Assembly (NCBI GenBank): GCA_035221665.1
Contig: CM069147.1
Coordinates: 25,730,001-25,794,000, forward strand
Reading direction: 5' to 3'
Source: Okamejei kenojei
Taxonomy: Eukaryota
Length of the DNA: 64,000 nucleotides
Shown here: piece after piece, positions 1 through 54,484 of the stretch
Layout: every line of letters starts with the position of its first letter
How positions within the stretch are numbered: position 1 is the first letter of the stretch
Made by a program: the position numbers and the translations under genes
The notes under the pieces: generated by a model
The model's input: only the letters and a program-made list of their open reading frames with translations
What the model was told of the DNA's origin: nothing
Database searches by the model: none

Positions 1-139
1 AAGGACACTGACCAGGAACTCCATCGGTCCAGTTGATTTTTGTGAGTTTACCCACCAGGAAGGGCCAATTTAACCTCTGCTACAGTCACCCGTGGGAGAG
101 GCATATTGGGGTGTGATGGGCCAGGTGTCACCATTATTC

Positions 140-3100
140 CTGTACAGTTTTTCGTCGTCCACATTTTTTGTTTTTAAAATTAGAACATTAGTTTTAATTT
201 CCCTGCTTTTTTTAGTAAAAAACTTCTTCATTTTTTTAAAATCAAGCTGCTGCATGAGACAGCGCCATCTCACAGATGTCCAATCACAATGGATCTAATT
301 ACCTATGATATGACATCACAATGGGACAGGGCTCGGAGATTGGAACCTTTAGGTGGGCCCGCTAAAATCAAACAGCTGCACGAGTCACAGAGCCATCTCA
401 CAGATGTCCCTAACGCACAATGGGACAGGTGTGGGAGATTGGAACCTTCACGTGGCTGCGTGTACAATCAAATTAGAGAGCAGGTTGTCCTATACCCCCT
501 CCCTATCTAACCCCTTTCCTCTCCCACCCACTCCCCTCTCCACCCCCAATCTCCGCTACCCCTCCCCCTCCACCACCCTTCGCCTATCCTACCCTCCCCT
601 CCTCCACCCCTCTCCCTCTCCTCCATCCCCATCTCTTCCCTCCCTCCACTTCTCCCCGTCCACTTCCTCCATTCTCATCTCCCCCTTCCCACTCCCCCAC
701 TTCTCTCTCCCTCCTCTCTCCTCCCTCCCCCTCACATCCCCTCCTCTCTCCCCGCTCCCTCCCCCGTCTCCCCTCTCCCCCCTCTACTCTCTCTCTCTCT
801 CCCTACTCTCTCTCTCCCCCTCTACCTTCCATCTACCCTCTGCTCTCTCTCCTCTCTCCCCCCTCCCTCCCCCCTCCATTCCCCCCTGCCCTATCCCCAC
901 TCCTCCCCACTTCTCTCCCACTCCCTTCTCTCTCCCCACTTCCCTTTTCCCACCGTCTCGCTCCTCACCCTTCTCTTCGCCCCATCCTCCCTCTCTCCCT
1001 CCATTTTCCCCGAACTCTCTCTCCCCCTTCTCTCGTCCCCTCTCCTCTCTCCCCTATTTCTCCACCTCCCTATTCCCACCTTCTCTCTTTCTCCTCTCTT
1101 CCCTGTCTCTCTCTCGGCCCCACTCCAGCTCCCTCTCCTCTACCTCCTTTTTTCCCCCCAGTACTCCTCTTCTCTCCCCCTATCCCTCTCGTACCCGTCC
1201 CCCATCTTTTCTGTCCCTCTCACCTCCTACCTACCCTTCCTTCTCTGGCCCCTCAATCTCACGATCCTCCCTGTCCTCCCCTCTCTCATCTTCACTCTCA
1301 ACCACCCCACCCCCCCACCTCCCTCTCCCCATTCATGCCCCCTCCCTCTACCTCCTCTCCCCAATCCCCTCCCTAAACCCCATTCCACCCTCCCCTTTCC
1401 TTTCCTCCTCACCTCCCTCCACTCCCTCCCCCTTTCCCTCCTCCTCCCCCTCTGCCCTTCACTTATCCCACCTCTCTATCCATCCTCTTCCCCCCTCTTC
1501 TCCCCCGAGTACTCTTCTTCCTTCTTCCCCTAATCCTCCTCTTATCTCCATTACTCTCCCCTCTATCCACTCTAACACCTTTCCTCATCTCAACCCCGCA
1601 ATTTTCTAAATCCTCCTTCTCCCCTCGACATCTTCACCCCATGCATCCTCTCTCCCACACCCATCTCTCCCTCCCCCCCTCTACTCTCCTCCCCTCTCTC
1701 TATCTACAATCTCTTTCTCCTCTCTCATATCCTTCACCCCTGCCATTCATCTCTCCACTCCAATCTCTTCCCTCTCACTCCCCTCACCTCTCTCCCCTCT
1801 CAATCTTCTCTCTACTCCACTCTCTCCCCCCTCCATTCTCTCCCCCTCCAATCTCCCCCCCACCTCTCCCTCTCATCACTCTCCCCCATCAATCTCTCTC
1901 CACCTCTCCCACACCCCCCTTTGTCCCTCCCCCTCTCCACTGTTCCAAAACCCCACTCACTCCACTCCTATCTTCCTCCATCTCTCTCCCCCCCACCCTG
2001 CCCTCACCGCTGCCCTCCCCTCTCTACCCACCCCACCTTTCCCCATGTCTTCACTACCACTGCGTTCTCTAATTTTAGCCCATCATCGATATCCATCCTT
2101 ATACTTCCCCTCAATACTGTTTCCTGGCGCCCCGAGGAATCATAATCCACCCCCGAGTATCTAAGTTCCCTGGGAGGGGGTTCATACCCTCCCCATCATC
2201 CCCTTCCCCCTATCTCCCCCTCCCCATCAATCTCCCACCATCCCCACTTTCCCCTCCTCCTCTCCCCTCTCCCCGAATCCCCCACCCTTCTCTAACCCCC
2301 TTCACCCACACCTTCTCCCCTCACCCCCTCCCCCTCTAATCCCACCCCTACCCCGTACTCCGCCTTATCTCCTCCACGCTCACCTCATTCCCCCCCCTCA
2401 TCCCCCTTTCTCCATTCTCCCATCATATTCGCCCCCGCACCTCCTCCTCCACCCCCCCCCCTCGCCCGTCTCCCCCCACACACTCACACCCCCCACCCCC
2501 AAACCTCTCACCGCCCCCCCCTCACCATCACCCCCCCCCCCCACCCCTTCCTCACCCACCACCCACTCTTCTCACACCCCTCACCCACCCACCCTCCCTC
2601 ACCCCACTCACCAACCCGCCCCCAATTCTCACCCCCAACACCCCCCCTCACCCCCCGCCACACCCTTCTCCACGCCCACCCCCCCCTCACCTTCTCACCC
2701 CACCCACTGTCTCCCCCCCACCACCCCCACGACCCCCCCCCCCCCCCTCTCTTCCCCCTTCACCTGACCTCACACCCGCCCCCCCCCTCGCCCTCCTCCC
2801 CACCGCTCCCTCACCCTCACCCACCCCACACCCTCACCCTCACCCGCCCCCCCGCCACCCCCCTCACCCGTTCTCACTTCCCGACCTCCACCCTTCACCC
2901 CCTAACCCACCCCCCTCTCCACCCCCCCACCCCCTCTCACACCCCCCCCCACACCCTTCTCACCCCACCCCCGCACACCCCCACCACACCCCCCCCCCCA
3001 CCCCAGCTCGAGGAGGTCCCAGAGGCTGAGATCTTCCCCCCCTCTCCCTCCCCTCTCCTCCTCCTTCGCTCCCTCCCTTCTTCCTTCCCCCGTATCACCG

Positions 3101-4539
3101 CACCCCCTCCCCTCTCGTCCTCCCCTCTCTCCTTCCTCCCCTCTCTCACTCCCCCTCACATCCCTCCTCTCTCCTCCCCCCTCTCTCCTCCCCTCACACC
3201 ATCTCTCATCACCCATCTCTCCTCACCCCTCTCCTCTCCTCACCCCTCTCTCCTCTCTCCCCATTCCCTATTTCTCCTCACCCTCTCTCCTCACCCCTCT
3301 CTCCTCAAGCCCGCTCTGCTTACCCCCTCAGCACCCCTCTCTCCTCAACCCTCTACTCATCTCTCCTTCTTCGCCCTCCTTCACCCCTCGCCCTCCTCCC
3401 TCATCCCCCTCCTCCTCCCTCCACCCTCTCTCCCACCCCCCCCTCTCCCAACCTCACCCATCTCTCCCCCTCTCCCCTTCCCCTCATCCCTCCCTCCCCT
3501 TCCCCATCCCCTCTCGACAACCCCTCCAACACTCTCGCATCCCCCCCCTACCCTCCCATCCCTACCACTTTTCCCCGTCCCCTCCGGCTCGCACCCTCCC
3601 CCTCCCCACCGGCCTGCTCTGTCCCTTCTCCATATCCTCCCCTCCCCAATCTCTCTCTCCCCCCATCTCCAACCGCCTCCTCCCCTTTCTTCTCCCTCTC
3701 TTCCTTCACAACCTCTCCCTCACAACGCTCTCCTCACCCACTCGCCCCTCTTCCCCCCCTCTGCATCCGCATCCCCCCTCTCAATCACCCCTCTCCCCAT
3801 CTCCCTCCCCTCACTCCCTCCCCCTCTCCCCATCTCCTCCTCACTCGCTCCCCCTCGCTCCCCCTCGCTCCCCCTCCTCCTTCCGTCCCCCCCTAAGTCC
3901 CCCTCTCTCCGCCCCCCCATCCCCGCTCTCTCCCTCCCCCTCCCACCCCTCTATCCCTTTCCCCTCTCCCCCTCCCTCTTCCCCTCCCCACTCTCCCCTC
4001 TATCCATCTCACCCTCATCCTCCTCCCTCCCCCCTCCCCGCTTTCCGACCCACCCATCTCCCTTCCTCCACCCTCCTTCTCCGCTCCTCCATTACCGCTC
4101 TCCCCTCCTCCACCGCACTCTCCCACCTCCAACCCCTGCTCCCCTCCTCCAACCCCCTCTCCCCCTCCAACCCCCTCTCCACTCCCTCTACCCACCACAC
4201 TCCTCTCCCTCCCCTCTCTTTCACCTCCCACTCCCCTCCTCTCCCGCTCCTCATATCTCCCCTCTCCTCTCTCCCCCTCCTTCGCTCCCCACGTCTACTC
4301 TCCCCTCTACTCCTTGGCCTCCTCCACCCTCCCGCCGCCTTCTCTCTCCGCCCCCTCGTTCCCCTCCTCTCCTCCCCCCCTCTCCCCTTTCCCTCTCCTC
4401 TCCACCCTCTCCCCTCTCGCCTCCCGTCTACCCCTACCCCCCTGTGTGTATGGCAGTTGGTTAGTGTGCGTGTGAAGGCGCCCACCCCCCCCCCCCGCGT
4501 GTTGGGGGAATAGACCCAGCGGGTCTGCACTTGGTCTAG
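140..4539 (+). mobile_element. Non-autonomous Helitron-like element carrying a ~4 kb C/T-rich tract, inserted into a Rex1 LINE
   Basis: The 3' end has hairpin AGACCC-agc-GGGTCT (4512-4526) followed 9 nt later by CTAG (4536-4539). Rex1 sequence resumes on both sides. The 5' end is not sharply defined. Confidence 0.5.
495..4440. repeat. Polypyrimidine (C/T) low-complexity tract
   Basis: Dominated by C/T with degenerate CCTCTCTC/CCCCT units; produces spurious Pro/Ser/Leu and Gly/Arg/Glu ORFs. Confidence 0.95.
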
Positions 4540-4610
4540 CAAGCACTTTGCCAGGTTCTTCCCGGTATTGCCTCTTGGCATCCTTGATGGCTTTGCGGAG
4601 GAGATGAGAG

Positions 4611-5058
4611 CAGGCATGGGTAGAAATTCTGGGGGGGGGGGTTCGGGGGGTGGGCCAACACGTCCTCCCATTGTTTTGAGAGATGGGGGACAATCCCCCC
4701 ATGTTTTGTAATTCGGATTTTTGATAATCGGTGAAAAGAAATCAATTAAAACTCCGCATTCCACGAGACAGTGGGGGTGTCATGTTAAGCGCTTGTTTAA
4801 TGTTTCTGTTAACATCGTATTAACAATGTGTCACCAATTGTGTCTTGACCTTCAAGACCTTCAACTGAAGTATACACGGAGAAGTTTTAAAGCTATCTGA
4901 TGCCCGGTACAATTACCATTTGAACTAATTGGATGTATTGGTGGATGGGAAAGATTTAAATGGGTATCGGATTTAAATGGGTCAGGTCAAAGTGGTTTCC
5001 TGGCTGGCTTGCAGGTAAGTCCCGCATTCACGGTCATTTCATGTTATTTAGTACTTTT

Positions 5059-5108
<50 letters not shown>

Positions 5109-5780
5109 ACTCTCTCCCGTCCAAGGTTGGTTCTTCTGTTTGCCTTTATTTTCTTCAGTTTTATTTATTTAAGTGTTATTTATCACGATTGTGATCCATT
5201 GTTGCTTTTGATAGATTCAAGCGGGTATCGGACGCGTTCTAAGGGGTTAAAGTGGCCCCTTCGCGGGGCCTCTCCTCGCCCGGTGTGTCGTAAAATGAGC
5301 AAAACTGCTGCATCAAGGCGATCGAGGCTCCCGATGTTGAAGCCCCCACGGCCGATTTTAAGCCGCGCCGGGCGATGAAAGGCCCCCGCCGATCGGGCTG
5401 ATTCATGCCCCCGCAAGTCAGGGCGGAAGAACCTGCTGTTGTTGGAGTTCGGAGCGCGTCACCAACCAAGGTCAGCTCCCAATGTTACCGTCACAGTGCC
5501 TTGGTTGAAGTNNNNNNNNNNNNNNNNNNNNNNNNNNNNNNNNNNNNNNNNNNNNNNNNNNNNNNNNNNNNNNNNNNNNNNNNNNNNNNNNNNNNNNNNN
5601 NNNNNNNNNNNNNNNNNNNNNNNNNNNNNNNNNNNNNNNNNNNNNNNNNNNNNNNNNNNNNNNNNNNNNNNNNNNGTCGGTTGTGTGTGTGTGTGTGTGT
5701 GGTCTGCCTGCGCGCATGCACGTGCGCGCGGCCACCAAGACATTGTGTATCCCCCACAATTGTGTTCCCTGCCGATTATT
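4611..5780. mobile_element. Putative non-autonomous DNA transposon (hAT-like MITE) with nested repeats and (CT)n/(GT)n microsatellites; mirrored at ~59045-60014
   Basis: End caggcatgggtagaaattctgggggg...gtcc resembles G-rich hAT-type TIRs; it interrupts Rex1 coding remnants. Confidence 0.4.
5512..5675. other. Assembly gap (164 N)
   Basis: N run adjacent to a (GT)n microsatellite. Confidence 1.
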
Positions 5781-8700
5781 TGATTAGCGATATTAGAGGC
5801 CATTCTTGTACTGCTCGGGTCGTTTGACGTATGCAGAGACTGGCCTGACCTGTGAAGGTACCTCGCTCACGTTAACATTCCGGAAACCCATCCATGGTTT
5901 CAGGATTGGGGAACACTCAGATTGTCTTTGACACAATATTCAGTGCATATGTGGTGAAGTCCAGTACAGTTAGTTGTGACGTGCTCATTCAGGTTAGCTT
6001 GCGGTAACCAGGATTATGGACAGTTCACTGACTCAAGGTTTTTTGTTAACAGTATTTGGCCGATAAGTGCAAAGTGTTTGTGTGATGTGTGTTAAGGCGG
6101 GGGAATGGGCGGGGAGAGGGAGAATCTTTGTCCTGAAAGAGAAAAAAATCGTTCTTAGTGAAGAGAATATGACAAGAAGCCGATGGACAATGCGATTAGA
6201 TTGACCTGTTCGTGTTGTATATTTCTATTGACTCCGGTTATCTAATATTTTTTCATTGGTAAGGCCACTTGAAGTTGGGTATTTTGCAGTGTCATAAAAT
6301 AATCTTGTGAATGTGCCTGTTGTGAACTTTTGACGGAATCATATCTCCGAACACATAATCACACTGCCTAATTGTGAACAACTGGTGCCTAAAATTCCTT
6401 AGCTTATTGGTGGATCAAACGAGGATGGTGATAAGGAGGTCGCTAATATCACGGGCAGCGAAATTCGCCATGTGCTGCGGTTGTGCGATGAGTAATCCAA
6501 TGAAATAAAAATGCTTAATTTGAAAATACAAGTTTATTCGATTGAGGGATTATGGATGTATAAAATATCGAATTCAATAAAAATTCACTAAATCGAATCT
6601 TGAATTAATTATTTGGTATGGAAAGAAAATAATTCAATGATTACATGCACAAGCTTAATAATTAAAGCAATAAATGGAATTTGGAATGCAATTCACGCAT
6701 GTGAAGGTAAACATAATTAATAGGGAATATGGGAATTGTAGATAACCAATGAGATGTCTAAGGACAATTAATACGTTAGCACGCTGCGTGGAGCCTCCTC
6801 ACTAAGAAGTAAATGTGCCTGTTATAACATTCTCAGTACATTAGAAAAGTAGGTCAGCGGCAATGAAAGTAAAGTATTATTTTTTGAATGATAGGACGAA
6901 TGCACAGAGTATTTTACCCAGAGTACGGGAATGAAAAACTAAAGGACATATGTTGAAGGTGAGAGGATAGAGATTTAATTGAAAAAAAAAACTGACGGGC
7001 ACTGCATTCACATAGCGGGTGTCTGCAACGAGCTGAATCAAATACTTATAACAGCATGTTTTGGATATTTGGGTTGGTATATATATATAGAAAACGTTGT
7101 GAGGGATATGAGTCACATTGGACGGCATGCAGTTTGGTCCAGGGCCTTTTTCCATGTTGTATGAACCAATGATGCTATGATTCTCGGACTCTATGGAATA
7201 GAATAAAATTATCGAATAATTCAGTTCGAGAGTAACTGATACATTTTCGATTCACTTCATATAGCCCGTCGAATTTACTTGTTTTTTTTCACCCCGCCTA
7301 TATACTACACTTATTTTCTTTAAGGTTGCCGTATTTTCAATTTCTTTTTGGAGCTTGACGTGTTTCAGGGTAGCGTGTGTGCAGTTCGTTATCAGCAGCA
7401 GCCTATAATTGCGATCTGTGCACAAATGTTTGTTTTGTTAATTGGACAAGGGAAAACGACAAATTTGCTCCGAGTAAGGACGTATCTGTATGCTCAGATG
7501 TGTAGAGTAAAAGCGAGGTGAAACGATCATTTACCACTTTGCATGCACAGGGCTATCAACGTGCTCTTCAGGTTTCCCTTATTCTTTGCTGCGGACAAGA
7601 TCCAAATGGGCGTGCATGGAATTGCGGCTAACTTTCTCTTCTTCTTCCTGGAAATTCATGAACTTATTTTAAAAAGTAGTTATACTACTAGATGAAGCTT
7701 TCGATCGGAATGCGCTGCAAGAATATACGAGGGACAATTATTTGTTGTTTTTGTCTCAATGACTTCTCGCACGAAGACCAATTTCCAGAGTCTAATCGAA
7801 CTGTAGGGCAAACAGTCCCAACTGGACAGATCAAAATGATAACTGCACATAACTATAGAACATAGAACGGTACAGCATAGGAACGCGTCCCTTCAGCCAA
7901 AAATGTTTGTGCTGAACCACGATGACCTCCTACACATCGATTCACTTTAGCATCTTGACATTTAACCTTACATGCGCCATCCTAAGTGCAACAGCTCAGA
8001 CTGCTCGGGTTATACTCTATCATGCTCCGTCTGCCATTTCTCCACCCACTTCTATCGATGATCTCTAACTCTCTGTATCTTCCGACAGCCCCCCTCGCTG
8101 GCTGCAACTCTACTGTTCTGTTGTTCAGCAAATTTACTCAACAATTCATCTAGATTTATGTCTACGTCATTTATATATATCACAAATAACAGTGGTCGTG
8201 TGGAATTCCACTGATCCAGACCTTCAGGCAGATCTTCTTCGACAAACTCTGTCGCTCTGAAGAAGTCAGCTCTGCTAATTAATATCACCAAGTTACAGTA
8301 GGTCCTTTTATATCTTGATCTTGATCTTTTGGATCAACTTATCACGAGGGACTTATCACAAGCTTTCCTAAGATTCGAGTTTGCAGCAGCTATCTGCCCT
8401 GCCCTCATGAAGTCTCCTTTGTCATCTGTTCAGAAAATCAATTTTAATCAGTAAAAACGTGTTAGGCCGTGCTGGCTATCGCTATTCGTCCATTCTCTTC
8501 CCAATGTCAGTAGATCCTCTCTTGAAGAAGTCTTTCCAATCGGTTCCCAACCACTAACGTGTGGTCAACCGACCTATATTTAGATCCAACTGGTTGAGAC
8601 TTGGATTCCCTCCACTTCGCTTCTTAAACAAATGGAAAAAAACACGTCCACTTCCAGTAATCCGGAATCTCGCCTGTGGCTGGACAAGAAAGCAGTAAGG

Positions 8701-9500
8701 TACAATGAAAATATTCCTTTATACCACACCTGGTGTAAACAATATATATATTTTATAATAAAATGCGAAACTCCTGTAAAATGCTTTTATATTGTTCTTT
8801 TTGTCCTCCTGTGTGTGGTGTGTACTGTGAAAACCTTCACGGATTGGGCATACGTTCAAAACAGAATAAGACGTGGTCCTTATTTTAAAACGATTTCGGT
8901 TTTCAACAAAGGCAGAATCCTGAGTTACTTTCACAAATGGAATAGTCATGTATTAAATAAGCCTTACCCAACTTTGTGTCCGATTTGTATTTACTGTACG
9001 CTTCTTTGCATCTGCTCGGAAAATATTAAAACAGTGATAAATGGCCGTGCGACATGGTGTTTTTCTAGCACGCAAAGAACGTAATATCATGTGATTAATT
9101 GCACGGTAGAGTTTCACTATATACGCTTCACTACATACACCACGTTTGTTTCTGCCCACGCTTTTTCCAAGATGTTGGACGACACAGTGGTGGAACAGGT
9201 AAATGCGGAGTTTGAGGCATTATCTTCCCTGTGACACGTGGAATTCACCGTTGCTCCAGTATACTCCCACATCCCAAGAATGTGCGGATTTGTGGGTTAA
9301 TTGACCTCTGTAAATTGCCCCCACTGTGTATTGAGAGAATACGAAAGTAGGTTAACCTAGACATAGTGTGAACGGATGATCGATGGCCGGCGTGGAATCG
9401 ATGGGTTAAAATGCCTGTTTTTCTGCTGTATCTTCCAAAAAATCAAACACATTCTTATCACAAAATTCACTGATGTTCTGATCTTGACCAATAGGTACAA

Positions 9501-9514
9501 TTAAATGCTGGCTG
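9501..9514 (-). CDS. Gene A, putative last coding exon: very short cytoplasmic tail (AASI*)
   Basis: Acceptor cacatag|CAGCCAGCATT-TAA. The right copy has the same residues ending in TGA (54722-54735), so the stop position is kept with a different codon. Confidence 0.45.
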
Positions 9515-9752
9515 CTATGTGATGATGTATCGAAATAAAACATAGAATTTTAAATATGTGATAATCAAACATTAGTCACGTGCAAAATTGAATATCTTCA
9601 TTACGTCGGTGCTATTTATTATAATCATAATTGTTGCCCGTGCAAATGTTTCATTTCCTTTATTTATCAAGCGAATCGTGTAATTACCATTTACTATTAC
9701 ATTAATATATTATACTGGGATGATGATAATGTTAAACATGGATGAGAAATTA

Positions 9753-9856
9753 CTCTAAATATAATTGTCATCGCAGACGACAACGATGAACATTAAATTA
9801 AACACTGCACCTCGGATATCTTCCAGCGATTACAGAAGCAGATAAACATTCGACAG
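9753..9856 (-). pseudogene. Gene A, exon 4: transmembrane exon, frameshifted in this copy
   Basis: Acceptor cccacag|CTGTCGAA. Homologous to the intact exon at 54383-54484 but with two single-base insertions (GGAAGATATCC, GTCGTCTGCG); reads AVECLSASVIAGRYPRCSV*. Confidence 0.75.
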
Positions 9857-10641
9857 CTGTGGGGGGGGGTTAAACCGATGGACCAAATGTTTATATTTTA
9901 ATTGAGTATTTCAAAGTAGACCTTTGCGACGAAAAAACAAAGCAAGATATTTCAAATGTTCACTCAATGGATTTTACCAGAACCGCGTGGAAGGCGGCAA
10001 AGAGCCAACAATTTCGATTTATGGCTCGATTAGGATTGAAATAAACAGCTCTTAGGTGAACCTAGTGGGATATTGACGTTAGGGAAAAAAAGAAATTGTG
10101 GAAATAATACATGAATTTGTATATATTCTGTTCACCAACTCTTGAAGGAGATGTTAATGTTACTGACGCTGGCCAGGAGTGAATCATTACAGACGTCTTC
10201 TCCCCACTAACTGTCCCCAATTAATGCAAGAGGCAACAAGATAGTTCTCATAGATAGACTGAAAATGCTAGCGTAACTCAGCGGGTCAGGCAGCATCACA
10301 GCAAAGGAGGTCAGGTGGGGGGTGATGAAAACACGACAGGGGTGAGGGCTGGAGTCAGGGGCGAGCAAAGGTGCTGAAGCAGGGTCGGGTGTGGGGGCCA
10401 GAGGGCTTCAGAGAGGAGGGGTTGGGAGGAGCTGGCAAGGGCGGGCAGGGGAGGGGTATTAAGATCATAAGGAATATGAGAATTAGGCAATTCGGCCTAT
10501 CATGTCTACTCCGCAATTCAACCATGGCTGATCTATCTCCCCCTCCTAACCCTATTCTCCTGCCTTCTCCAAATGACCTCTGATATCTATAGTAGGTGTA
10601 GAGTGGTTAGGAGCAGAAACATCTGTGTTAATTGATTATTT

Positions 10642-10805
10642 TTACATTATTCCTCGGGAAGGTGTGATGTTTGTGGAGGCATCAGAGTGGACTTGTAGAT
10701 CACGTGAAAGGGAATGGGCTACAGGTTCGCGATCGATTGCGGGAACGGTATTGATGAAATTCTTCTGGGAGGCAACATAGACTGGATGGACTTTACAGCG
10801 TCCGT
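10642..10805 (-). CDS. Gene A, possible alternative terminal (secretory-type) exon DGRCKVHPVYVASQKNF...TPSRGIM*
   Basis: Long polypyrimidine tract and tag| acceptor ~165 nt below the C1 donor. A phase-1 join gives an open ~54-residue hydrophilic tail, also open in the right copy (51328-51491). No canonical AATAAA was seen just after it. Confidence 0.35.
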
Positions 10806-10971
10806 CTACGCCGGGAGGAAAAGGATAGAGAAAATAGGAAAATTGCACAAGTTCTCGGAAAATAAATTTGCTGCACAAAATACGGTCTTTTAAAAATCTT
10901 CACATTTTATTTTTACTATTAATATTATTATTCAATGGACTGTCCATTATACTATCCGTAGGAAACGTTAC

Positions 10972-11277
10972 CTTCATGAGGAACCGTGTAGTTGGCAGTT
11001 GCTGGAGTTAGCATAGAACGGTGAATAATTTTACACGTGTAAACGGTTCCTTCTTTGACTGCCCGTTTCTCCTCTAAAGAGCTGATAACTTCATACAATC
11101 CGTCTGCCGTTGAATGTTGTTCATGCCGAAATCCAGATTGGATGATGGAACCATTTCTGTGCCAGGTGAGATTAAATTCTTTCGGGTAAAAGGCAGCCGT
11201 TCTGCACTGGATTTTCAGGAAATGAGTCGCAGCATTTCTAGATCGAACAGATACAATCTTCAGAGGAGAAGGGACAG
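10972..11277 (-). CDS. IgSF receptor gene A, exon 3: C1-set Ig constant domain (absent from the ORF track)
   Basis: Acceptor ctctctacttag|, donor G|gtaacg, 306 nt open, phase 1/1. Translation (A)VPSPLKIVSVRSRNAATHFLKIQCRTAAFYPKEFNLTWHRNGSIIQSGFRHEQHSTADGLYEVISSLEEKRAVKEGTVYTCKIIHRSMLTPATANYTVPHE has C-x4-FYP, W-x-x-NG, DGLY and YTC-x3-H. Confidence 0.93.
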
Positions 11278-12154
11278 CTAAGTAGAGAGGAATATAATTA
11301 AAAGAAAGGGGAAAAGTCGATTACATCATCCAATAGCATTTGTTCCAACGCTACTTAATTCCATCATAATTTTTAAATCGGGAGCCCAGATGAAGGTGTA
11401 ATTCATCGCAATTGACCCCCCCCCCCATTCCCTTGACATGCATTCCCTTGACATTTAATTTAAGAAAAGAGCACTAATTTGCACACTTGTTTCTTGTGCT
11501 ACCATGCGCGAATCAACTTTCAAGTTTCAACTCTCCAAAGGCACAATACTGTTGTGAATATTTCAACTTCCCAACATAATCAGTCATAAACAGTTGCAGA
11601 CTTTGACTGGCTTACAGAGAATGCTTTGAATAAAATTTCTTGTTTCTCTATTTCGGCGCAAGAAATATAAATTATATTTCAATTATTTTGTGGAAGTAAA
11701 AACCTCGCTCTTTCAATTCACAGGATTATATGTTGATAACATTATCATTAGGAAAACATCAGGAAGATCCCCACCTCGGCGTCATTGTCAAATTGAAACC
11801 GTTGTATTTATTCATATGACACTCACTACCTTCAATATACATCAGCTCAAATATCATTGCTGTCATTCCCTCTGGCCTATATTTTCGAACGAATCAATCT
11901 AGAATAATTGTCCAACGTTTTGCACATTTGTATTCTGGATTAAAGACTTTTGTGAAGCAAAATCCAAATTCGAGCTGCAACTGAATACCTAAGAAGGAAA
12001 CTGCAGACTCGCTGAAATCGAAAGTGCTGGAGAACTCAGCGGGTGCAGCAGCATAATTCGGGCCGAAACGTTGCCTAATTTCCTTCGTTCCTGCACCCGT
12101 GACCGCTGGTTTCTCCAGCATTGTTGTCTAGCAACTAAAGAACCGTTCGCTCAC

Positions 12155-12466
12155 CATATACGATCAGTTGCTCTCCTGTTCCCTTCCAAACCGTTCGGCC
12201 CGCTTGTTGTGCAAGACAATTGTATGTTCCGGCGTCCGAGACCGTGACATTCAGCAGGTGAAGGTAGGCGCCTCCTGCCCTTATAATGAAGATTTTCCTG
12301 CTATCTTCTTTCAGGAAGCCTTTATTTCTATCTTTCCACCAGAAAACCGTTAGGTTTGACAGATTTACATTGAAGGGGAAGGAACACCGACAGGTAATGT
12401 TTATGCCACTGATCACCGTCTTCTGAACAACATTCGATATCATCTTGCCCGACCTGTTCTCAGCAG
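12155..12466 (-). CDS. IgSF receptor gene A, exon 2: V-set Ig domain with germline-joined J-like motif (NKp30/SIRP/VJ-type)
   Basis: Acceptor ctaatgacag|, donor G|gtgagc, 312 nt open, phase 1/1. Translation has the V-set hallmarks ITCRCSFP, VFWWK, AYLHLLNVTVSDAGTYNC and the J-like KGTGEQLIVY. Confidence 0.92.
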
Positions 12467-12758
12467 CTGTCATTAGATGGTGCACAATCCAGTTTAGTCA
12501 TTGATATACAGCAATGGAAATTAAACACTGCTGGTAAAAAATTATTGCACGCAGACCAAATATTTACAATGAATTGAACCGAATTATTATGCCCGCTTTT
12601 TGTGTCCTCGTAAAGGTTTCGTAAATTACACCACTTTCCAGAACTCATACAACAGCAATGACTTTATGGACAATTCGGCATGACATTATAAGGTACAACT
12701 ATCATATCTGCGTATTTTGAAGACCCATAAATAAAAAGCAATAGAAGCCGTAGTTTAC

Positions 12759-12813
12759 CCGCATTCAAAATTCCAAGGAAATACATCGTCCAAGGTGACA
12801 CTTTCAAAAACAT
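12759..12813 (-). CDS. IgSF receptor gene A, exon 1: signal peptide (MFLKVSPWTMYFLGILNA)
   Basis: ATG at 12813, 18 codons + 1 nt, then donor G|gtaaac. The phase-1 intron matches the next exon. Confidence 0.75.
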
Positions 12814-12935
12814 ATCGACGACGAAGCAGGCCTGGCTGGGAAAGATGAAGGTCTGGTTAATAATCGTCACGGTATCTTCTACACTGACTCCTAATCACAT
12901 CGGTCACCCCAGGACATGGCCGAGAAATGCGTTGC

Positions 12936-12988
12936 TTTTAATATAGGGCTGTCTGAGTGTCTGAAGGCGGAAATTGCGTCAGGAAATA
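12936..12988 (-). promoter_or_regulatory. Candidate promoter of gene A: ETS - CRE/ATF half-site - ETS cluster plus TATA-like box
   Basis: Minus strand ATTTCCTGACGCAATTTCCGCC (~12966-12987), then TATATTAAAA (~12936-12945), ~125 nt upstream of the ATG. The motif cluster is largely retained at ~48974-49000. Confidence 0.4.
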
Positions 12989-15249
12989 GAAGGCTGTTTT
13001 ATTTGAGGACCTCAAACAGTGCGCACATTGATCATTTCTCGATTTTCGTCCTCGTGAGAGGATCTAATTAAAATAAGATGCCAAATAAGAAAATTGCCTC
13101 CCCCCCCCCTCGAGAATTTGATAAGGCCATGAATGAACCAATCTTGGTTTCAAACGCCGCTTTTCTGTTATTTTCCCCTTTAACGACCTTCAAAGCTCAT
13201 ATATTTCCTCAGATTTGCCTTGTATACATTCAATAACGCCCACCCAGATCCTTCTCTTTTCTGTTTAGTATGTGTTCCACCCTTTGGTTCCCTTAAATTT
13301 CGCACTAGAAACCCTAATTAAAAAGTACGTTCCCGCAATCAACACGACCGCCCACAACCCGGAGCATTTATATGTTTCAATATGATCACCTCTTGTTTTA
13401 TATAGTCCATCACGACATAACTATAGATTTAAGTAGTTATGCCTGGGTACCTTGCTGTGGCATTCCGCCATTCACTGTTAGTCAATCAGGAAATCATCCA
13501 TTCATCCCATTGCCCTTTTCAGATAATTAACCATCACAGCATCCATTTCCTTATAAATTATATCGATAACACGTTCGCGTGTTCCTATCTTGATCAGATA
13601 TCTTCTATAGGGAATAATATAAAGTGCTTCAGGATATCCATATATAGGTTCTTAGAGTTCCCTTTTATTCACATTGCTCCATCGTGAAATAATGCTAGAA
13701 AATATATCAAAATATGTGTGTTTTTCATAAACCCACTGACTCTTGATAGACTTATAGTTTCATCAACGCCCCGCTACTCTTTAATCAGTAATGGATTTGA
13801 ACACTTTCCCACTCGCAATTGACAGAATAACTTGCCAATAGTTTCCTCCTATTTGTGCCACTCTTGTCTTTACACGTTTACAGTTTTCCCAGATCTATTC
13901 AAAATTCACGAAGTTTTATTTCAGTACAAAATAGAACCCGCCACATCTACAGTCACCCCATTGGTTCGTAGTTAAACCACCGAAAACGTTCTTCTATCGC
14001 CATAGCATCTCCTTAATTATTATTGTTCGATATTCCTAGTTTCCTCTACCGGGGAAACCAGATACTAAGCTATTGTTTACAATGCTTCGCACATTCCACC
14101 CCATGAATAATATAATACACACATTCGTTATGGGGTAAAATGTTTAATTTAGTTACTCTCTTCCTTGTTATCTATGTGAAGAATGTCTTGCTCTCCGCCT
14201 CAATGTTATTTATTGCATTACGCACAGGCTCTGGCCCGTTCTCGTTATTTTATTTTACCCGTCGGATCTTAGTTTAGATGAGCTTAGATACAGCGTGGAA
14301 ACAGACCCTTCGCGCCACCGAGTCCGCGCCGACCAACGATCACCTGTACATTGCTTCTCTTCTACACACAAGGGACAATTTACAGAGGTCAATTAACCTA
14401 CAAACCCGCAAGCCTTTTGGGATGTCGAACGAAAACGGAGCAGCCGGGGAAAACCCAACGATCACACTCAAAACATGCAGACATCACCCGTCGTCAAGTT
14501 CGAGCCCGCGTCTCTGGCGCTGTGAGGCAGCGGACTCGAAACCAGTTAGGTAATAATATGTACAAATTGACTATTCATGCTAACGCGGGTTGTTTACATT
14601 CGAAATATATTAGTCTCTGTGGTATTTCTTTTATTATCCTTCATAAAGATCCAATCAAATAACATCGGTCGTATAGGCCTTGTCACGTTTAAAAAGTGGG
14701 ATTTTTATCCGATTTACGTAGTCTCTGAAATTTATGTGGAGGTCGGAGCCGGGACCTTTTTTTTACCGACCGACTCCAGCAGCATCAAAATTGCTTTGAC
14801 TCCGACTCGACGACTCCCACTCCGACTCCACAGCCCTGGATTCAACAATGTATAATTATTTTAATAAGGCGAAGTAACATATTTACTATCCTCCTCGTTT
14901 CCCTGGTGGACCCTGTATTGATTCTCATCGTGCCTTTACTACTGACGATGTGCACCTTAGGCGCAAGATCTTATTTAGCATTGAAGATGTCTGCGTTTCT
15001 TGTCGATTATGAACTTAGTCACGGACTCGGTGTTGAAGGTATCGGAGAATAAACAAAACAAATCGGGCAGGTAAAATGAAGGTGCATTCTTATTCAGCTC
15101 ATTATCTAGTAAGGGCTAGGTTCAATTTCGCTATGGAAACGTGGTGAATTTAATTATATTTTGTTTAAAATTGAGAATTTACTCATACTGATAATTAAAT
15201 TGCGGGGCTGTTCTTCAAATCTCGTGTGGCTCAATTAAGCCCTTTATAG

Positions 15250-16120
15250 GATGTGTTATATCTGGACTTTCAGAAGGCTTTCGACAAGGTCCCACCTAAG
15301 AGATTAGCATACAAACTTAAAGCACACGGTATTGGGGGTTCAGTATTGATGTGGATAGAGAACTGGCTGGCAGTCAGGAAGCAAAGAGTAGGAGTAAACG
15401 GGTCATTTTCAGAATGGCAGGCAGTGACTAGTGGAGTACCGCAAGGCTCAGTGCTGGGACCCCAGCTATTTATAATATATATTAATGATCTGGATGAGGG
15501 AATTGAATGCAACATCTCCAAGTTTGCGGATGACACGATGCTAGGGGGCAGTGTTAGCTGTGTGGAGGATGCTAGGAGGCTGCAAGGTGACTTGGATAGG
15601 TTGGGTGAGTGGGCAAATGCATGGCAGATGCAGTATAATGTGGATAAGTGTGAGGTTATCCACTTTGGCGGCAAAAACAGGAGGGTAGACTATTATCTGA
15701 ATGGTGGCCGATTAGGAAAAGGGGAGATCTTATAGAGACTTACAGAATTCTTAAGGGGTTTGAGAGGCTAGATGCAGGAAGATTGTTCCCGATGTTGGGG
15801 AGCTCCAAAATAAGGGGTCACAGTTTAAGGATAAGGGGGAAGTCTTTTAGGACCGAGATGAGAAGATCTTTTTTCACACAGAGAGTGGCGAGTCTATGGA
15901 ATTCTCTGCCACAGAAGGTAGTTGAGGCCAGTTCATTGGCTATATTTAAGAGGGAGTTAGATGTGGCCCTTGTGGCTAAAGGGATCAGGGGTTATGGAGA
16001 GAAGGCAGGTACAGGATACTGATTTGGATGATCAGCCATTATCATATTGAATGGCGGTGCAAGCTCGAAGGGCCGAATGGACTACTCCTGCACCTATTTT
16101 CTATGATTCTATGATTCTAT
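15250..16120 (+). mobile_element. Young 5'-truncated CR1 LINE (RT domain plus 3' tail), internally deleted at ~15727
   Basis: YLDFQKAFDKVP...GVPQGSVLGP...KFADDT; 3' tail ttctatgattctatgattctat. Confidence 0.92.
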
Positions 16121-26762: not shown

Positions 26763-27090
26763 TAATGACCGGCCTTCTCGTTCAAGTGTGGGCGTGCGTC
26801 AGGTTCCGATAAGGTAACGAAGGTGAAAGGTGTAAATGTATCCTTATACTGTGCTTTCCAAAACTTCGATCGGGAAGCACTGCTGGATGTATACTGGAAG
26901 ATAAGAGGGTCAAGAAGAGACTTGGTCCCACCCCAAACAGGAGGATGACAACGAACAACGTCCCGAAGGGATTTGCCGAATTACTTTTGTTAGCGTGGGG
27001 TTCCGTGACTCGGGGTCTATTATTGCAGTGTGAGGAGATAGGCAAAGGAAACAGTTCCGAAGGGCCAATGGGCGAGGATTATTGTAAACG
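26763..27090 (+). pseudogene. Gene B: second, divergent V-set Ig exon (frameshifted as assembled)
   Basis: Acceptor ttctgacag|, donor G|gtgtgagt. Frame-hopping translation VTKVKGVNVSLYCAFQNFDREALLDVYWKIRG / RRMTTNNVPKGFAELLLL / VGFRDSG / YYCSVR / RIIVN. Some shifts are single-base losses next to short homopolymers. Confidence 0.8.
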
Positions 27091-27320
27091 GTGTGAGTCT
27101 TACTTGATGTTTAGTTATCCCAATAGAAACACATACATATGGTGTGCTACAGAGTTAAAAAAAATAGCGATAAACGAACCGTTGTTGCTCAGTCTGTACT
27201 AGAGGTTTTGCTTCCAATTAATGTATTTAGTTTTTCGTGATGGTGAACCATGGATTCTTTGGACAATCATTATTCTTTCCTTTCATATCATTTAGTTATT
27301 TTTTTTATGTCTGGGTTAAG

Positions 27321-36036: not shown

Positions 36037-38945
36037 GAAACATAGAGAGAAACATAGAAATAGGTGCAGGAGTAAGGCATCAAAGCCCTTCGAGCCTGAC
36101 ACCCGCCATTCATTATGATCATGGTGATCATCCAAACTCAGTAAACCGTACCTGCTTCTCTCCATACCCTCTGATCCCCTTAGCCACAAGGGCCACATCC
36201 AACTCCCTTCTTAAATATAGCCAATGAACTGCCTCAACTACCCTTGTGGCAGAGAGTTCCAGAGGACTCCACACACTCTCTGTGAGAAAAAAGTCTTTCT
36301 CATGCGGTCTTAAAGGGATTTCCCCTTTCCTTAAGCTTGTGGACCCCTTGTCCTGGACTTCCCAACATCGGGAACAATCTTCCTGCATCTAGCCTGTCCA
36401 ACACCTGCTAAGTATTTTGTAAGTTTCTATAAGATCCCCCTCTCAATCTTCCTAAATTCAGAGAGTATATAATACCGAGTCTATCCAGTCTTTCTTCATA
36501 AGACAGTCCTGAAATCCCGAGGAATCTGGTTGGTGAACCTTCTCTTTGCACTCCCTCTATGGCAATAATGTCCTTCCTCAGATTTTGGAGAAAAACCAAA
36601 AACTGTACGCCTTACTCCAGGTGTGGTCTCACAAGGGACCCTATTTGTACAACTGAAGTAGAACCTCTGCTCTGTACTCCAAAATCCTTTTGCTATGAAA
36701 GGCTATCATACCATTCGCTTTTTTCACTGCTGCTGCACTACTGCATGCCTGACTTTTCTTGACCTGTGTACCCATGACACACAGGGTATCGCTGCATCTC
36801 CCCTTTTCCTAATCGGCCACCTTTAAATAATAGTCTGCTTTCCTGTTTTTGCCACCATAAAAAGTGGTACCTCACATTTTATCCACATTATACTGCATCT
36901 GCCAAACATTTGCACACTCACCCAAGCTTATCCAAGTCACCTTGAGTCTCCTAGCATCCTCCTCACAGCTAACACTGCCACCAGCTTAGCTGTCATCCGC
37001 AACTTGGAGATATTGCCTTCAATTCCGTCATCCAGATCATTAACTATATATTGTAAAATAGCTGCGTCCAGCACTGGCACCTGCGGGGTACCCACTAGTA
37101 CTGCCTGCCATTGTGAAAAGGACCCGTTTACTCCTATCTTTGCTTCCGGTTTGCCAGCCAGTCTCTATCACATATTACTGAACCCCTAATACCGTATGTA
37201 CTTTAAGTTTGTATACAATCTCTTATGTGGGACCTTTGTTCGAAAGCCTTTCTGGAAGTCCAGATATTACCACATCCACTGGTTTCTCCCTTATCCACGC
37301 TACTAGTTACATCCTCGAAAAAAAATTCCACAAGATTCGTCGACATGATTTACCTTTCGTAAATCCATGTGACTTTGTTCCAATGATTTCACCACTTTCC
37401 AAATGTGCTGCTATCCCATCTTTATACAAAATGACCTATGCAGTTTCCCCACTACCGATGTTAGACTAACTGGTCTTTATTTCCCCGTTTTCTCTCTCCC
37501 TCCCTTCTTAAAAGAGGGGGTTTCACATTTGCTACCGCCAAATCCTCAGGAATCTACTCAGAATCTAAAGAGTTTTGAAAGATTATCACTAATGCATCCA
37601 CTATTTCCTGAGTACTTCCTTAAGTACTCTGGGGGATGCTCGCCTATCTGGGCCATGGGGATTATCGGACCTTTAATCTATTCAATTTACCCAACACCAC
37701 TTCCCGACTGACCTGGATTTCACTCAATTCCTCCTTAGACCCACAGTCCCCTGCTATTTCCGGCAGATTTATATATGTCTTCCTTAGGTGAAGACGGACC
37801 AAAGTAGTTATTCAATTGGTCCGCCATATGCTTGTTTCCCCATGAATCAAACTACCTGTTTCTGATGCAAGGGACCTACATTTGTTTTAACTAACCTCTT
37901 TCTCTTCACATATCTATAAAATCTTTTGCGCAGTCAGTTTTTACGTTCCCTGCCTGTTTTCTTGTCATGATCTATTTTTTCTTTCTAAATTAAGCCCTTT
38001 GTCCTCTCTGTGGTCTCTGACAATTTTCCAGTCCTCTGGTAGCTGCTTTTTCTGGCTACTTTGTATGCATCATCCTTTGCTTTGATTGATACTATCCCTG
38101 TATTTCTCTTGTTATCACAGGATGCACTACCTTCCCCTCGATTTATTCTTTTGCCAAATGGGATGAACCAATTTTTTGTAGTTCATATGCAGTCTTTAAT
38201 GTCTTCATTGTATATCCACCTGTCAACCCTTTTTGAATTAATTGCCAGTCAATCTTGGCAATTCACGTCTCATCCCCTCAAAAAGTTAACTTTCTTTAAG
38301 TTCAGAACCAATTGTTTCTGAATTAACACTGTTCACTCTTCCCTCCTTAATGAAGAACTCAACCATATTATTGGTCATCTTGTCCAAGGGGGCACGTACA
38401 AATGACGGCTTAACTACCCATTCCTCATTACTCAAAACCAGTCTAAATAGCCTGCTCTCTCGTTGTTTCCTTACATGTTGATTTAGGATAACTATCCTCG
38501 CATACATTCCAAAAAATCCTCTTCCTCAGCACCCTGCCAATTTTGATTAAACCCAATCTATATGTAGATTGAAGTCCACCCATTATAACTGTTTTGCCTT
38601 TGTCGCATGCATTTCTAATTTCCTGTTTGATTACTCCCCAACATCTTCTGCTACTGTTTTAGGTGGCTGTACACAACACCCCCAGCGTTTTATGCCCTTA
38701 GTGTTTTTGTAGCTCTACCACATACCGAATCCACATCCTCCAAGCTATTGTCTTCCTTTCCATTGCGTTAATCTTCTTAAACCAGCAACGCTACCCCAAC
38801 TCCTTTTCCTTTCTCTCTATCCTCCTGAATATTGGAATATTCCCTGGATGTTCAGTCTCAGGCCTACCGTCACCTGGAGCCATGTCTCCGTGATCCAACT
38901 ATATCATAACATTAATATCAATGTAACTCTTTTTGAATTTTAATG
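36037..38945 (-). mobile_element. Long CR1 LINE (~2.9 kb; EN/RT and 3' end), heavily indel-ridden
   Basis: Reverse complement of the 15250-16120 element, extended upstream through ORF2. Confidence 0.9.
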
Positions 38946-39507
38946 CCGATGTTAAAACCCCGTCCCGTGGGAGGGGCTTTGGTAATGGTTTCATAGTGCC
39001 TTCATTGTTGGTCAGTGCCGTTTCACATGGACGCTCTCGCAGTTGCCAGTTTTCGGCAACATTCCATAGCCGCTCTATATAAGTGCAGTCAGGACGTGAT
39101 GACCGGTGGTCTGGACCTATCGCTGGCAAGTCTGGCCCCCTGGACGTCATGTCGTTATTTGATTTTTCGGTTGATGGGGCTTTGGTTACTTGGCTTCTGT
39201 GGGCGACGCAGCCTTTCTGTTAGTTGGGATTTTAGGCGTAAGGCCTTTCAGTTAGTTTGCATGAGGGTAGCCACCATTGGTTCGTTAGCGTTTGGCTTCG
39301 TACCCTTTCGGCTATTTGGCTCCACTTCTTTGCTTCGGCTTCTCGTCTAAGTACGCCACGTCCGCCACGATTTCCAAAACATTGTTAAATAGTTTACTAA
39401 TAAAGGAAACGCTCAAGAAGTTATGTATAATCCATTTCGAACGAGCGATTATATTGTTTCTAAATAGCATTAGGGGAGCTAACTCTTTTATCTTAAATTG
39501 TTGGCAT

Positions 39508-39793
39508 TTGTTCCCGATGCCTTTGAAGATTAAACAGATGAAACACTCCCTTCCCTGGCCCTAAAACTGTACAACAGCACCGTTTTTCCCTGAGGTACTG
39601 TGAACTTACCTGGTATAAAGATGACCAAAAATCATTCTGGAATCAAGTACCACTAAAATACCGGAACGAGCAGGGATTATACCTTTGCTTCAGCTTCCTG
39701 CATGTAGTGGATAGCCGATTCGGTTTATAGTTGCAAAGTGTCTCACGCACCTCCTGGTTCCGACCGTTGAAATCACAGGAGTTCTTGGAATGG
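39508..39793 (+). pseudogene. Gene C: second C1-set Ig exon (disabled as assembled), paralog of the gene A C1
   Basis: LFPMPLKIKQ...CTTAPFFPE / ELTWYKDDQK / RNEQGLY / DSVYSCKVSHA aligns with VPSPLKI...CRTAAFYPK...LTWHRNG...DGLY...VYTCKIIH. Confidence 0.8.
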
Positions 39794-41990: not shown

Positions 41991-42490
41991 NNNNNNNNNN
42001 NNNNNNNNNNNNNNNNNNNNNNNNNNNNNNNNNNNNNNNNNNNNNNNNNNNNNNNNNNNNNNNNNNNNNNNNNNNNNNNNNNNNNNNNNNNNNNNNNNNN
42101 NNNNNNNNNNNNNNNNNNNNNNNNNNNNNNNNNNNNNNNNNNNNNNNNNNNNNNNNNNNNNNNNNNNNNNNNNNNNNNNNNNNNNNNNNNNNNNNNNNNN
42201 NNNNNNNNNNNNNNNNNNNNNNNNNNNNNNNNNNNNNNNNNNNNNNNNNNNNNNNNNNNNNNNNNNNNNNNNNNNNNNNNNNNNNNNNNNNNNNNNNNNN
42301 NNNNNNNNNNNNNNNNNNNNNNNNNNNNNNNNNNNNNNNNNNNNNNNNNNNNNNNNNNNNNNNNNNNNNNNNNNNNNNNNNNNNNNNNNNNNNNNNNNNN
42401 NNNNNNNNNNNNNNNNNNNNNNNNNNNNNNNNNNNNNNNNNNNNNNNNNNNNNNNNNNNNNNNNNNNNNNNNNNNNNNNNNNNNNNNNNN
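41991..42490. other. Assembly gap (exactly 500 N; looks like a fixed-size scaffolding join)
   Basis: N run of round length. Confidence 1.
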
Positions 42491-51400: not shown

Positions 51401-51569
51401 TCGCGAACCTGCAGCCCATTCCCGTTCACGTGATCTACAAGTCCACTCTGATGCCTCCACAAACATCACACCTTCCCGAGGAATAATGTAAAAAGAATCA
51501 ATTAACACACAAAGCAGTTCCTTGGTAAAATCTCAGAGAATGTGCAATGTCCATGCAGACAGTACCGGA

Positions 51570-52250
51570 GGGTACACAAAATGCTGGAGAAACTCAGCGG
51601 GTGTAGCAGCATCTATGGAGCGAAGGAGATAGGCAACGTATCGGGCCGAAACCTTCCTCGCCTTCCCCCCACCTGGTGGGGGGAGGCGGAGGGAAGAAAG
51701 GAAAAGGGAGCAGGCGGAGCCCGAGGGCTGAGGGAGGGATAAGAAGGAGAGAAGACAACAAAGGGTTAACAGAATTGAGAAAATTCGATGTTCATGCCAA
51801 GAGGATGCAGACTTCCCTAGCGGAATATGAGGTGCTGTTTCTCCAATTTGCGGTGTTGCTCTCGCTGGCCGTGAAGGAGGCCCAGGATAGAGAGGTCGGA
51901 TACGGAATGGAGGGGTGAGTTGAAGTGCTGAGCTACGGGAGGTGGGTTGTTAATGCGGACCGAACGGATGGTATTCGGGCGAAACGATCGCCAAGCCTCC
52001 GCTTGGTCTCACCGATATAGATCAACTGACATCTAGGAGCAAGCGGATGCAATAGATTAAGGTGGAGGCGGTGCAGGTGAACCTCTTGTCGGACCTGGAA
52101 ACGTTGTTGGGTCATTGAATGGAGTGGAGGGGGGAGGTAAAGCGACATGTGTAGCATCTCTTTGGTTGCAAGGGAAAGTGCCGGGGAAAGGGGCGGAGCG
52201 GGAGGGAAATGAAGGTTGACAAAGGGTGTTGCGGAGGGAACGGTACTTTG
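51570..52250 (-). mobile_element. Penelope-like element remnant with GIY-YIG endonuclease
   Basis: CQLIYIGETKRRLGDRF motif; flanked by the ctcagcgggtg...gaaggagataggcaacg terminal repeat. A second PLE-like remnant lies at ~52871-53985. Confidence 0.8.
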
Positions 52251-54382: not shown

Positions 54383-54484
54383 CTGTCGATGGTTTATCTG
54401 CTTCTCTAATCGCTGGAAGTATCCGAGGTGCAGTGTTAATTTTAATGTTCATCGTTGTCGTCGCGATGACAATTATATTTAGAG
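54383..54484 (+). CDS. Gene A' intact transmembrane exon with intramembrane Arg (AVDGLSASLIAGSIRGAVLILMFIVVVAMTIIFR)
   Basis: Acceptor ctccaaag|, donor AG|gtatgt, 102 nt, phase 1/1; hydrophobic stretch containing R. Confidence 0.85.

Follow-up and report, generated by a model that had tools for sequence, protein, structure and literature searches.

A non-rearranging V-C1 gene of Okamejei kenojei and its paralogue in an inverted duplication

Exon organization of the V-C1 gene

The stretch of Okamejei kenojei DNA analysed here (contig CM069147.1, a window of 64,000 nucleotides; all coordinates are positions in this window) carries two copies of an immunoglobulin (Ig) superfamily gene in opposite orientation. 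Copy A, the main subject of this work, is a minus-strand gene that extends from position 12813 down to approximately 7275. Its paralogue, copy B, lies on the opposite arm of a large inverted duplication. A preliminary description of the locus had joined a leader, a germline-fused VJ domain and a C1 domain to a transmembrane (TM) segment supplied by the paralogue, and had proposed a non-rearranging activating receptor. The exons of copy A, including two relics of cytoplasmic exons related to immunoreceptor tyrosine-based inhibition motif (ITIM) tails, are listed below. They were searched, folded and put in trees one by one rather than as a spliced full-length model.

12813-12759, minus strand: leader exon; ATG at 12813, 18 codons (MFLKVSPWTMYFLGILNA) plus 1 nt, donor GTAAAC, split leader
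12466-12155, minus strand: V-type exon; 312 nt, phase 1 in and out, acceptor ACAG, donor G/GTGAGC
11277-10972, minus strand: C1-set exon; 306 nt, phase 1 in and out, acceptor TTAG, donor G/GTAACG
9856-9753, minus strand: TM exon; 104 nt, two extra single bases relative to copy B
7647-7537, minus strand: relic cytoplasmic exon (ITIM pair); in-frame stop, both Tyr changed to His (…SMHAHLDL…stop…SPVHAK)
7415-7275, minus strand: relic terminal cytoplasmic exon; frameshifted, five small insertions relative to copy B

As had been described before, the leader, V and C1 exons are intact and consistent in phase: all three are open, in phase 1 and bordered by AG/GT splice sites. Leader residues 1-18 share 67-78% identity with three ray proteins, P0155 (Pristis pectinata), P0156 (Hemitrygon akajei) and P0157 (Mobula hypostoma). 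The V exon contains the cysteine pair, WW and DxGxYxC landmarks, and encodes a germline-fused J-like G strand (…CLAQQAGRTVWKGTGEQLIVY) with the C-terminal end KGTGEQLIVY. No recombination signal sequence (RSS) heptamer (CACAGTG or CACTGTG) was found anywhere in 10900-12900, and the sole near-nonamer is isolated. The claims that the V domain ends in a J-like motif (GTGEQLIVY) within the same exon, that no RSS is adjacent to it, and that the architecture is that of a non-rearranging, germline VJ-type domain followed by C1, were borne out by these observations. A rearranging receptor, with an RSS-flanked V and a separate J, was rejected on account of the J-like strand inside the V exon and the lack of a heptamer in the interval searched.

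The assignment of the first domain to the V type held only in part. In its favour are the J-like end and the Pfam 'ig' model, which passes for the V exon (27.0 bits, cut-off 21.8) and also for P0155. However, the domain is short, with 56 residues between the cysteines, and its structural model (predicted local distance difference test, pLDDT, 88) has eight strands and no C''. The Pfam V-set score (PF07686) is 23.8 bits, under the gathering cut-off of 26; P0155 also falls under this limit (23.6) and passes I-set. Structure searches with the V model gave a tie between I-set domains, IgNAR V, T-cell receptor (TCR) V, BTLA and TREM (Z 11.3-12.4; TM-score 0.6-0.73), so that these searches do not discriminate between Ig types.

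The C1-set domain (motifs …FYPKEFNLTWHRNG…VYTCKIIHRS…) is as clear as had been claimed. It scores 40.5 bits against Pfam C1-set (cut-off 21), its sequence matches in PDB are Ig constant domains, SIRP, MHC and UrIg2, and in structure its AlphaFold model (pLDDT 89) fits MHC class II beta-2 domains with TM-scores of 0.75-0.82.

In two samples of this species, and likewise in a related species, DNA contigs covered the leader, V and C1 exons of copy A with no gaps, indicating that the open ectodomain exons are solid. Run X1 differs from copy A by four synonymous and five non-synonymous substitutions, which are too few to show selection. When the locus was compared by tblastn with the protein family described below, E values of 1e-42 to 1e-47 were obtained, a family resemblance far beyond chance.

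The introns of copy A contain very high-copy interspersed repeats (9240-9423, 10160-10711 and 12000-12183), the last of which begins just past the V exon donor. In every run, those of the related species included, contig word depth over these repeats ranged from thousands to hundreds of thousands.

Copy B and the inverted duplication

The arm at 1-14203 is repeated in inverted orientation at 63637-47645. The arms are approximately 14-16 kb long and 65-92% identical, and the spacer between them is approximately 33 kb. Identity is uneven: it is approximately 80% in the leader and V exon and 92% in the TM exon, and reaches 100% in the final approximately 130 nt of the C1 exon. The identical segment at the C1 end suggests a gene-conversion patch. 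The exons of copy B are the following.

approximately 49150-49215, plus strand: leader; ATG lost
49512-49855, plus strand: V exon; disrupted by 13 indel events relative to copy A, plus stops
50866-51177, plus strand: C1 exon; disrupted by 8 indel events plus stops, last approximately 130 nt as in copy A
54383-54484, plus strand: TM exon; open, 102 nt, phase 1 in and out, Arg present (AVDGLSASLIAGSIRGAVLILMFIVVVAMTIIFRG)
57184-57294, plus strand: first cytoplasmic exon; relic with stops, same stop and Tyr to His changes as copy A
57407-57538, plus strand: terminal cytoplasmic exon; open (…NELAHASL…ISVIYSEVKKNN, then stop)

Across the V and C1 exons, copy B is broken by every one of the 21 indel events and copy A by none. 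This asymmetry indicates that the ectodomain exons of copy A have been kept. The two arms are damaged in complementary parts, copy A in the TM exon and copy B in the leader, V and C1 exons, and for this reason the gene model of the preliminary description turned out to be a composite of both arms. The TM exon with Arg that it had taken from the paralogue is real and open, and aligns with the ray TM segment …IVRGAV…IIYF..KG of P0155 and P0157; but copy A has a TM exon of its own (9856-9753), which had been missed. The proposed tail of approximately four residues had to be abandoned, because the TM exon of copy B ends in a consensus donor (G/GTATGT), read-through would add approximately 20 residues, and further downstream there are relics of ITIM exons. 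The first ITIM exon carries the same stop and the same Tyr to His changes in both copies, indicating that it died before the duplication.

Two insertions of approximately 1 kb, located between the C1 and TM exons, are present only in copy B (51509-52554 and 52855-53940, plus strand). Open reading frames at 51933-52488 (minus strand) within the inserted DNA gave no Pfam match. The outer ends of the duplication consist of long low-complexity repeats coding for Pro, Ser and Leu (353-2072 and 60018-63329).

A family of V-C1 genes in cartilaginous fish

Besides giant multi-Ig proteins, a HMMER scan with the V exon returned single-stretch, full-domain matches of 31-53% identity. Those whose source was looked up were all chondrichthyan proteins of 220-450 residues. 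A profile built from 19 members retrieved approximately 60 proteins at E values of 1e-37 to 1e-137, followed by a cliff to 1e-8, where generic Ig proteins appeared. Members were found in sharks (Heterodontus, Heptranchias, Scyliorhinus, Mustelus, Carcharodon, Cetorhinus, Chiloscyllium, Hemiscyllium, Stegostoma and Rhincodon), in rays (Pristis, Mobula, Hemitrygon, Hypanus and Leucoraja) and in the chimaera Callorhinchus, and many genes of one species lie on a single chromosome-sized contig. The expectation that automated annotation would call such genes SIRP- or NKp30-like proved right. NCBI names include 'tyrosine-protein phosphatase non-receptor type substrate 1-like' (SIRP-alpha-like; the name borne by P0155), SIRP-beta-like, NCR3 ligand 1-like, tapasin-related-like, Ig lambda-like, MHC class II beta-like, CD276 homolog and uncharacterised.

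The V domains of the family have the signature …C.FPF…VYWW..G...FL..DSRK.F…LLNV…D.G.Y.C…G.G..L.V and the C1 domains the signature …C.TA.FYP…LTW.KNG…GLYEV.S.LEE…VYTC.V.H; the respective exons of copy A conform to both. The J-like GxGxxLxV end is nearly invariant among the members. Two forms occur. The first has an uncharged TM segment (…IAGCAGGAL…) and a long tail of repeated, ITIM-like LTYAxLxL…TVYAxxK, and the second an Arg (rarely Lys) in the outer third of the TM segment and a short tail.

Copy A and P0155 are 66% identical in their V domains and 67% identical in C1. In the V tree the exon of copy A stands beside P0155 in a ray clade (support 100/99), which lies inside a subfamily (100/100). 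The C1 tree gave the same ray clade (support 99) inside the subfamily (98); one long-branch group of this tree is an artefact of crude domain cutting, and only the placement of the window exon was used. Since the family matches were all chondrichthyan and copy A nests within the ray clade, the cartilaginous-fish origin proposed in the preliminary description is confirmed. The elasmobranch-wide subfamily around the ray clade contains ITIM forms (Heterodontus) as well as Arg-TM forms. The ray members P0155, P0156 and P0157 have an …IVRG(A/S)… TM motif, also present in copy B, and no ITIM. Their layout of leader, V, C1 and TM is the same as that of copy A. They are gene models without published function and, unlike theirs, the TM exon of copy A is frameshifted as assembled.

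Some annotated isoforms depart from this layout. In P0027 and P0106 (Heterodontus and another species) the V domain is followed directly by the TM segment and the ITIM tail, the C1 exon being skipped, whereas P0116, P0101 and P0103 end after C1 and have no TM segment. On the evidence of these annotations the family may also produce C1-less and secreted forms.

State of copy A

In its phase-1 reading as assembled, the TM exon of copy A runs into a stop after AVECLSASVIAGRYPRCSV. Between the breaks its sense is still SIRGAVFNLMFIVVV and AMTIIFR. The two insertions are not located in homopolymer runs. Read coverage of 9753-9856 is thin, and the insertions were neither confirmed nor refuted by it. 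At two other positions of the same arm, 7799 and 8858, every short-read contig is without one base that is present in the reference. Either these are single-base insertion errors of the reference, or the contigs derive from the other arm. Comparison of copies A and B also showed that, within a given region, small insertions fall preferentially in one arm. Copy A is one of three things: a young pseudogene, an intact Arg-TM receptor gene whose extra bases are assembly errors, or a gene for a secreted V-C1 protein.

A young pseudogene, in which two frameshifts destroyed the TM exon after the duplication and the leader, V and C1 exons have not yet decayed, has a substantial though less than even chance of being the right description. 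It agrees with the condition of the sole TM exon (two frameshifts, an early stop and a weakened donor) and of the cytoplasmic exons, which are frameshifted or dead. It also agrees with the occurrence of the copy A stretch in no RNA run, and with a neighbourhood filled by decayed relatives, namely copy B and a third pair of V-like and C1-like sequences (26.8 and 39.5 kb). However, approximately 670 nt of coding exons are free of stops and indels in copy A, whereas the same exons of copy B have suffered 21 indel events, and the related species keeps the leader, V and C1 exons without gaps. Moreover, apart from the two extra bases the coding sense of the TM exon is almost unchanged, indicating that its breaks are either very recent or not real.

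If they are not real, copy A would be an intact Arg-TM activating receptor, equivalent to the earlier composite model minus its tail. This is possible but doubtful. Without the two bases the TM exon reads like that of copy B and of the ray relatives (…SIRGAV…IIFR), the one-arm bias of the small insertions looks more like sequencing error than natural decay, and short-read contigs contradict the reference at 7799 and 8858. But the reads give no evidence at the two insertion positions themselves, the disagreeing contigs may stem from copy B, which is 92% identical there, and the insertions are outside homopolymer runs. The secreted V-C1 form takes the share of probability that remains after these two readings.

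Discussion

Copy A belongs to a multigene, non-rearranging family, found here only in cartilaginous fish, of what are very probably type-I Ig-superfamily receptors. Members have a split leader, a short V-type domain, one C1-set domain and a TM segment; the J-like GxGxxLxV strand that closes the V-type domain is part of the V exon itself. Copy A stands in the ray branch of the elasmobranch-wide subfamily, next to P0155 of Pristis, and the ray members of this branch are all of the Arg-TM, short-tail form. Since dead ITIM exons are common to both arms, the lineage probably descends from an ITIM-tailed ancestor, and the change would have preceded the inverted duplication. By analogy with the paired receptors SIRP, KIR, LILR and NKp30, the Arg-TM members would signal through an adaptor that carries an immunoreceptor tyrosine-based activation motif and a TM aspartate, the ITIM members would recruit SH2 phosphatases, and the V domain would bind a putative ligand. 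The term 'activating receptor', used in the preliminary description, suits the Pristis, Mobula and Hemitrygon relatives, which have an Arg-TM segment and no ITIM. It suits copy A less well, because its TM exon is frameshifted and the Arg-TM segment had been borrowed from the otherwise wrecked copy B. Copy A itself is an ordinary, possibly decaying member of the family.

Several points weigh against this interpretation. The restriction to cartilaginous fish comes from a word-limited profile search in which 8000 candidates were scored. Since the assembled copy A lacks a usable TM exon, the word 'receptor' may not fit it. The bias of insertions to one arm, together with the contigs that disagree at indels, means that some lesions in either arm could be assembly errors. 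No RNA run contains the copy A stretch; the one nominal RNA run (X21) that gave any coverage covers repeats only and is probably DNA. Finally, we infer the ligand, the adaptor and the expressing cell type of the family from the analogy with paired receptors.

As far as sequence comparison can tell, the family is antigen-receptor-like in its J-C1 part and not a clear member of SIRP, NCR3, B7 or UrIg. When the family profile was compared with PDB, the highest scores per stretch were obtained with Ig kappa (65.6 and 57.8 bits) and Ig lambda (61.3 bits), followed by SIRP-alpha (d1-d2, 48.8 bits; d3, 43.8 bits) and the V-C1 stretch of UrIg2 (41.5 bits). In total scores UrIg2 reached 109.9 bits, summed over three domains, and SIRP-alpha 91.9 bits.

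Mammalian SIRP (-alpha, -beta and -gamma) resembles the family in combining inhibitory ITIM members and activating members with charged TM segment and short tail in one cluster. SIRP binds CD47, and pairs with DAP12 through a TM lysine, the charge in the V-C1 family being Arg. That the family is the cartilaginous-fish orthologue of these paired receptors is nevertheless unlikely. The commonest automatic name given by NCBI is SIRP-alpha-like or SIRP-beta-like, a V domain with J-like strand is followed by C1-set in both, ITIM and charged-TM forms are paired in both, and the profile matches SIRP-alpha in d1-d2 and in d3. The spacing of the ITIM pair in the SIRP-alpha tail may also be similar to that of the family. 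However, the family has one C1 domain and not two, its TM charge is an Arg in the outer third and not a mid-membrane Lys, and the same profile scores Ig kappa and lambda (57.8-65.6 bits) higher than SIRP-alpha. No bony-vertebrate SIRP appeared in the family profile search, and a search with the ITIM tail of a chimaera member alone (P0089, residues 262-406) returned chimaera proteins only and no SIRP-alpha. The SIRP architecture of V plus two C1-set domains was rejected: a single C1 exon lies between the V and TM exons, and the family proteins have one C1 domain.

As a clustered paired-receptor family, the V-C1 genes would work most like SIRP and the NITRs of teleosts. NITRs are clustered, fast-evolving, non-rearranging genes with a V domain that has a J-like end, most of them with ITIM and a minority with a charged TM segment (PMC2442602, PMC7916673). 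The two families appear to work alike, but the second NITR domain, where present, is not of the C1-set, NITRs have been reported only in bony fish, and no sequence link between them was seen.

A more far-reaching proposal sees the family as a direct relic of the antigen receptor before RAG, and as the non-rearranging sister closest to the Ig light and TCR chains. This is improbable on present evidence. The order V-J-C1, the split leader and the phase-1 exons of Ig light and TCR chains are found in copy A, with the C1-set domain directly after V-J, and a charged TM segment followed by a short tail is TCR-like. The J-C1 stretch of the family scores best against Ig light chains. Copy A differs from these chains in that V and J are germline-fused, without RSS, and in its short V domain without C''. 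UrIg, UrIg2 and NCR3 are the described non-rearranging VJ genes of elasmobranchs, and it has been argued that UrIg and UrIg2, as non-rearranging VJ-C1 genes, are pre-RAG relics (PMC12227049, PMC10751288), which would favour the same status for the present family. Like it, UrIg and UrIg2 (PMC12227049; PDB 9dmx) have a split leader, a single-exon VJ, C1-type domains and no rearrangement, and occur in cartilaginous fish. They differ from it by their 3 to 11 C domains, their single or low copy number and, in the case of UrIg, by secretion, where the family has one C1, many copies and paired signalling tails. The UrIg/UrIg2 architecture (VJ plus 3-11 C domains) was rejected for copy A because of its single C1 exon, and the UrIg2 V-C1 stretch gave only 41.5 bits. 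Against the relic status speak the small score differences and unrooted trees, the short, I-set-like V domain, unlike that of Ig and TCR, and the pairing of ITIM and Arg forms, which is typical of innate paired receptors. It is correspondingly improbable that the family descends from the receptor that was later split by the RAG transposon, with copy A being expressed, whether as Arg-TM receptor or in secreted V-C1 form.

Least likely of all is that the family represents a B7 ligand (B7H6/NCR3LG1-like) or the NKp30/NCR3 receptor: the automatic names 'NCR3 ligand 1-like' and 'CD276 homolog' and a match of the V-only profile to the V domain of PD-L1 (37-38 bits) favour it, but TCR V-alpha (39 bits) does no worse than PD-L1, and the pairing of ITIM with charged-TM forms is a receptor trait and not a B7 trait. 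In NKp30, as in the V-C1 family, a short Ig domain carries a J-like strand and the TM segment an Arg. However, NKp30 has no C domain, and its architecture of a single VJ-type Ig domain is ruled out for copy A by the clear C1-set exon in phase after V. None of NKp30, SIRP and B7H6 was among the PDB matches listed in searches with the single V-exon sequence and with the V-only profile. The nurse-shark NCR3 genes (MT914154-61) have a description of their own (PMC12227049).

Non-rearranging V(J)-C1 genes of cartilaginous fish bear on the form of the antigen receptor before RAG. The family described here is large and occurs in sharks, rays and chimaeras alike. It comprises inhibitory as well as activating forms and is filed under at least five misleading automatic names; a proper description of it would be useful. 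No description was found in the literature on elasmobranch non-rearranging VJ genes, which was covered in part, and an earlier one may exist. The copy A locus adds little to this beyond one more copy of the family, and its own interest is local. It lies in the complementary damage of the two arms of an inverted duplication, and in the dead ITIM exons behind an Arg-bearing TM segment, which would be a record of a switch from inhibitory to activating function.

Other features of the window

No framework genes were found in the 64-kb window. A third, decayed copy of the gene lies in the spacer, its C1-like part 12.7 kb downstream of its V-like part. These pseudo-exons resemble a different subfamily (P0144, P0147 and P0134). 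They are listed with the runs of N.

26805-27095, plus strand: V-like pseudo-exon of the third copy; three stops (…VKGVNVSLYCAF…VYWKIRG…GVYYCSVRR…GQWARIIVNG)
39505-39751, plus strand: C1-like pseudo-exon of the third copy; stops and frameshifts (…LTWYKDDQK…SVYSCKVSHA)
5512-5675 and 41991-42490: N runs

The spacer also contains a retroelement's reverse-transcriptase fragment at 15253-15735 on the plus strand (Pfam RVT_1, 81 bits), and related pieces are present at 36796-37277 and elsewhere in the spacer.

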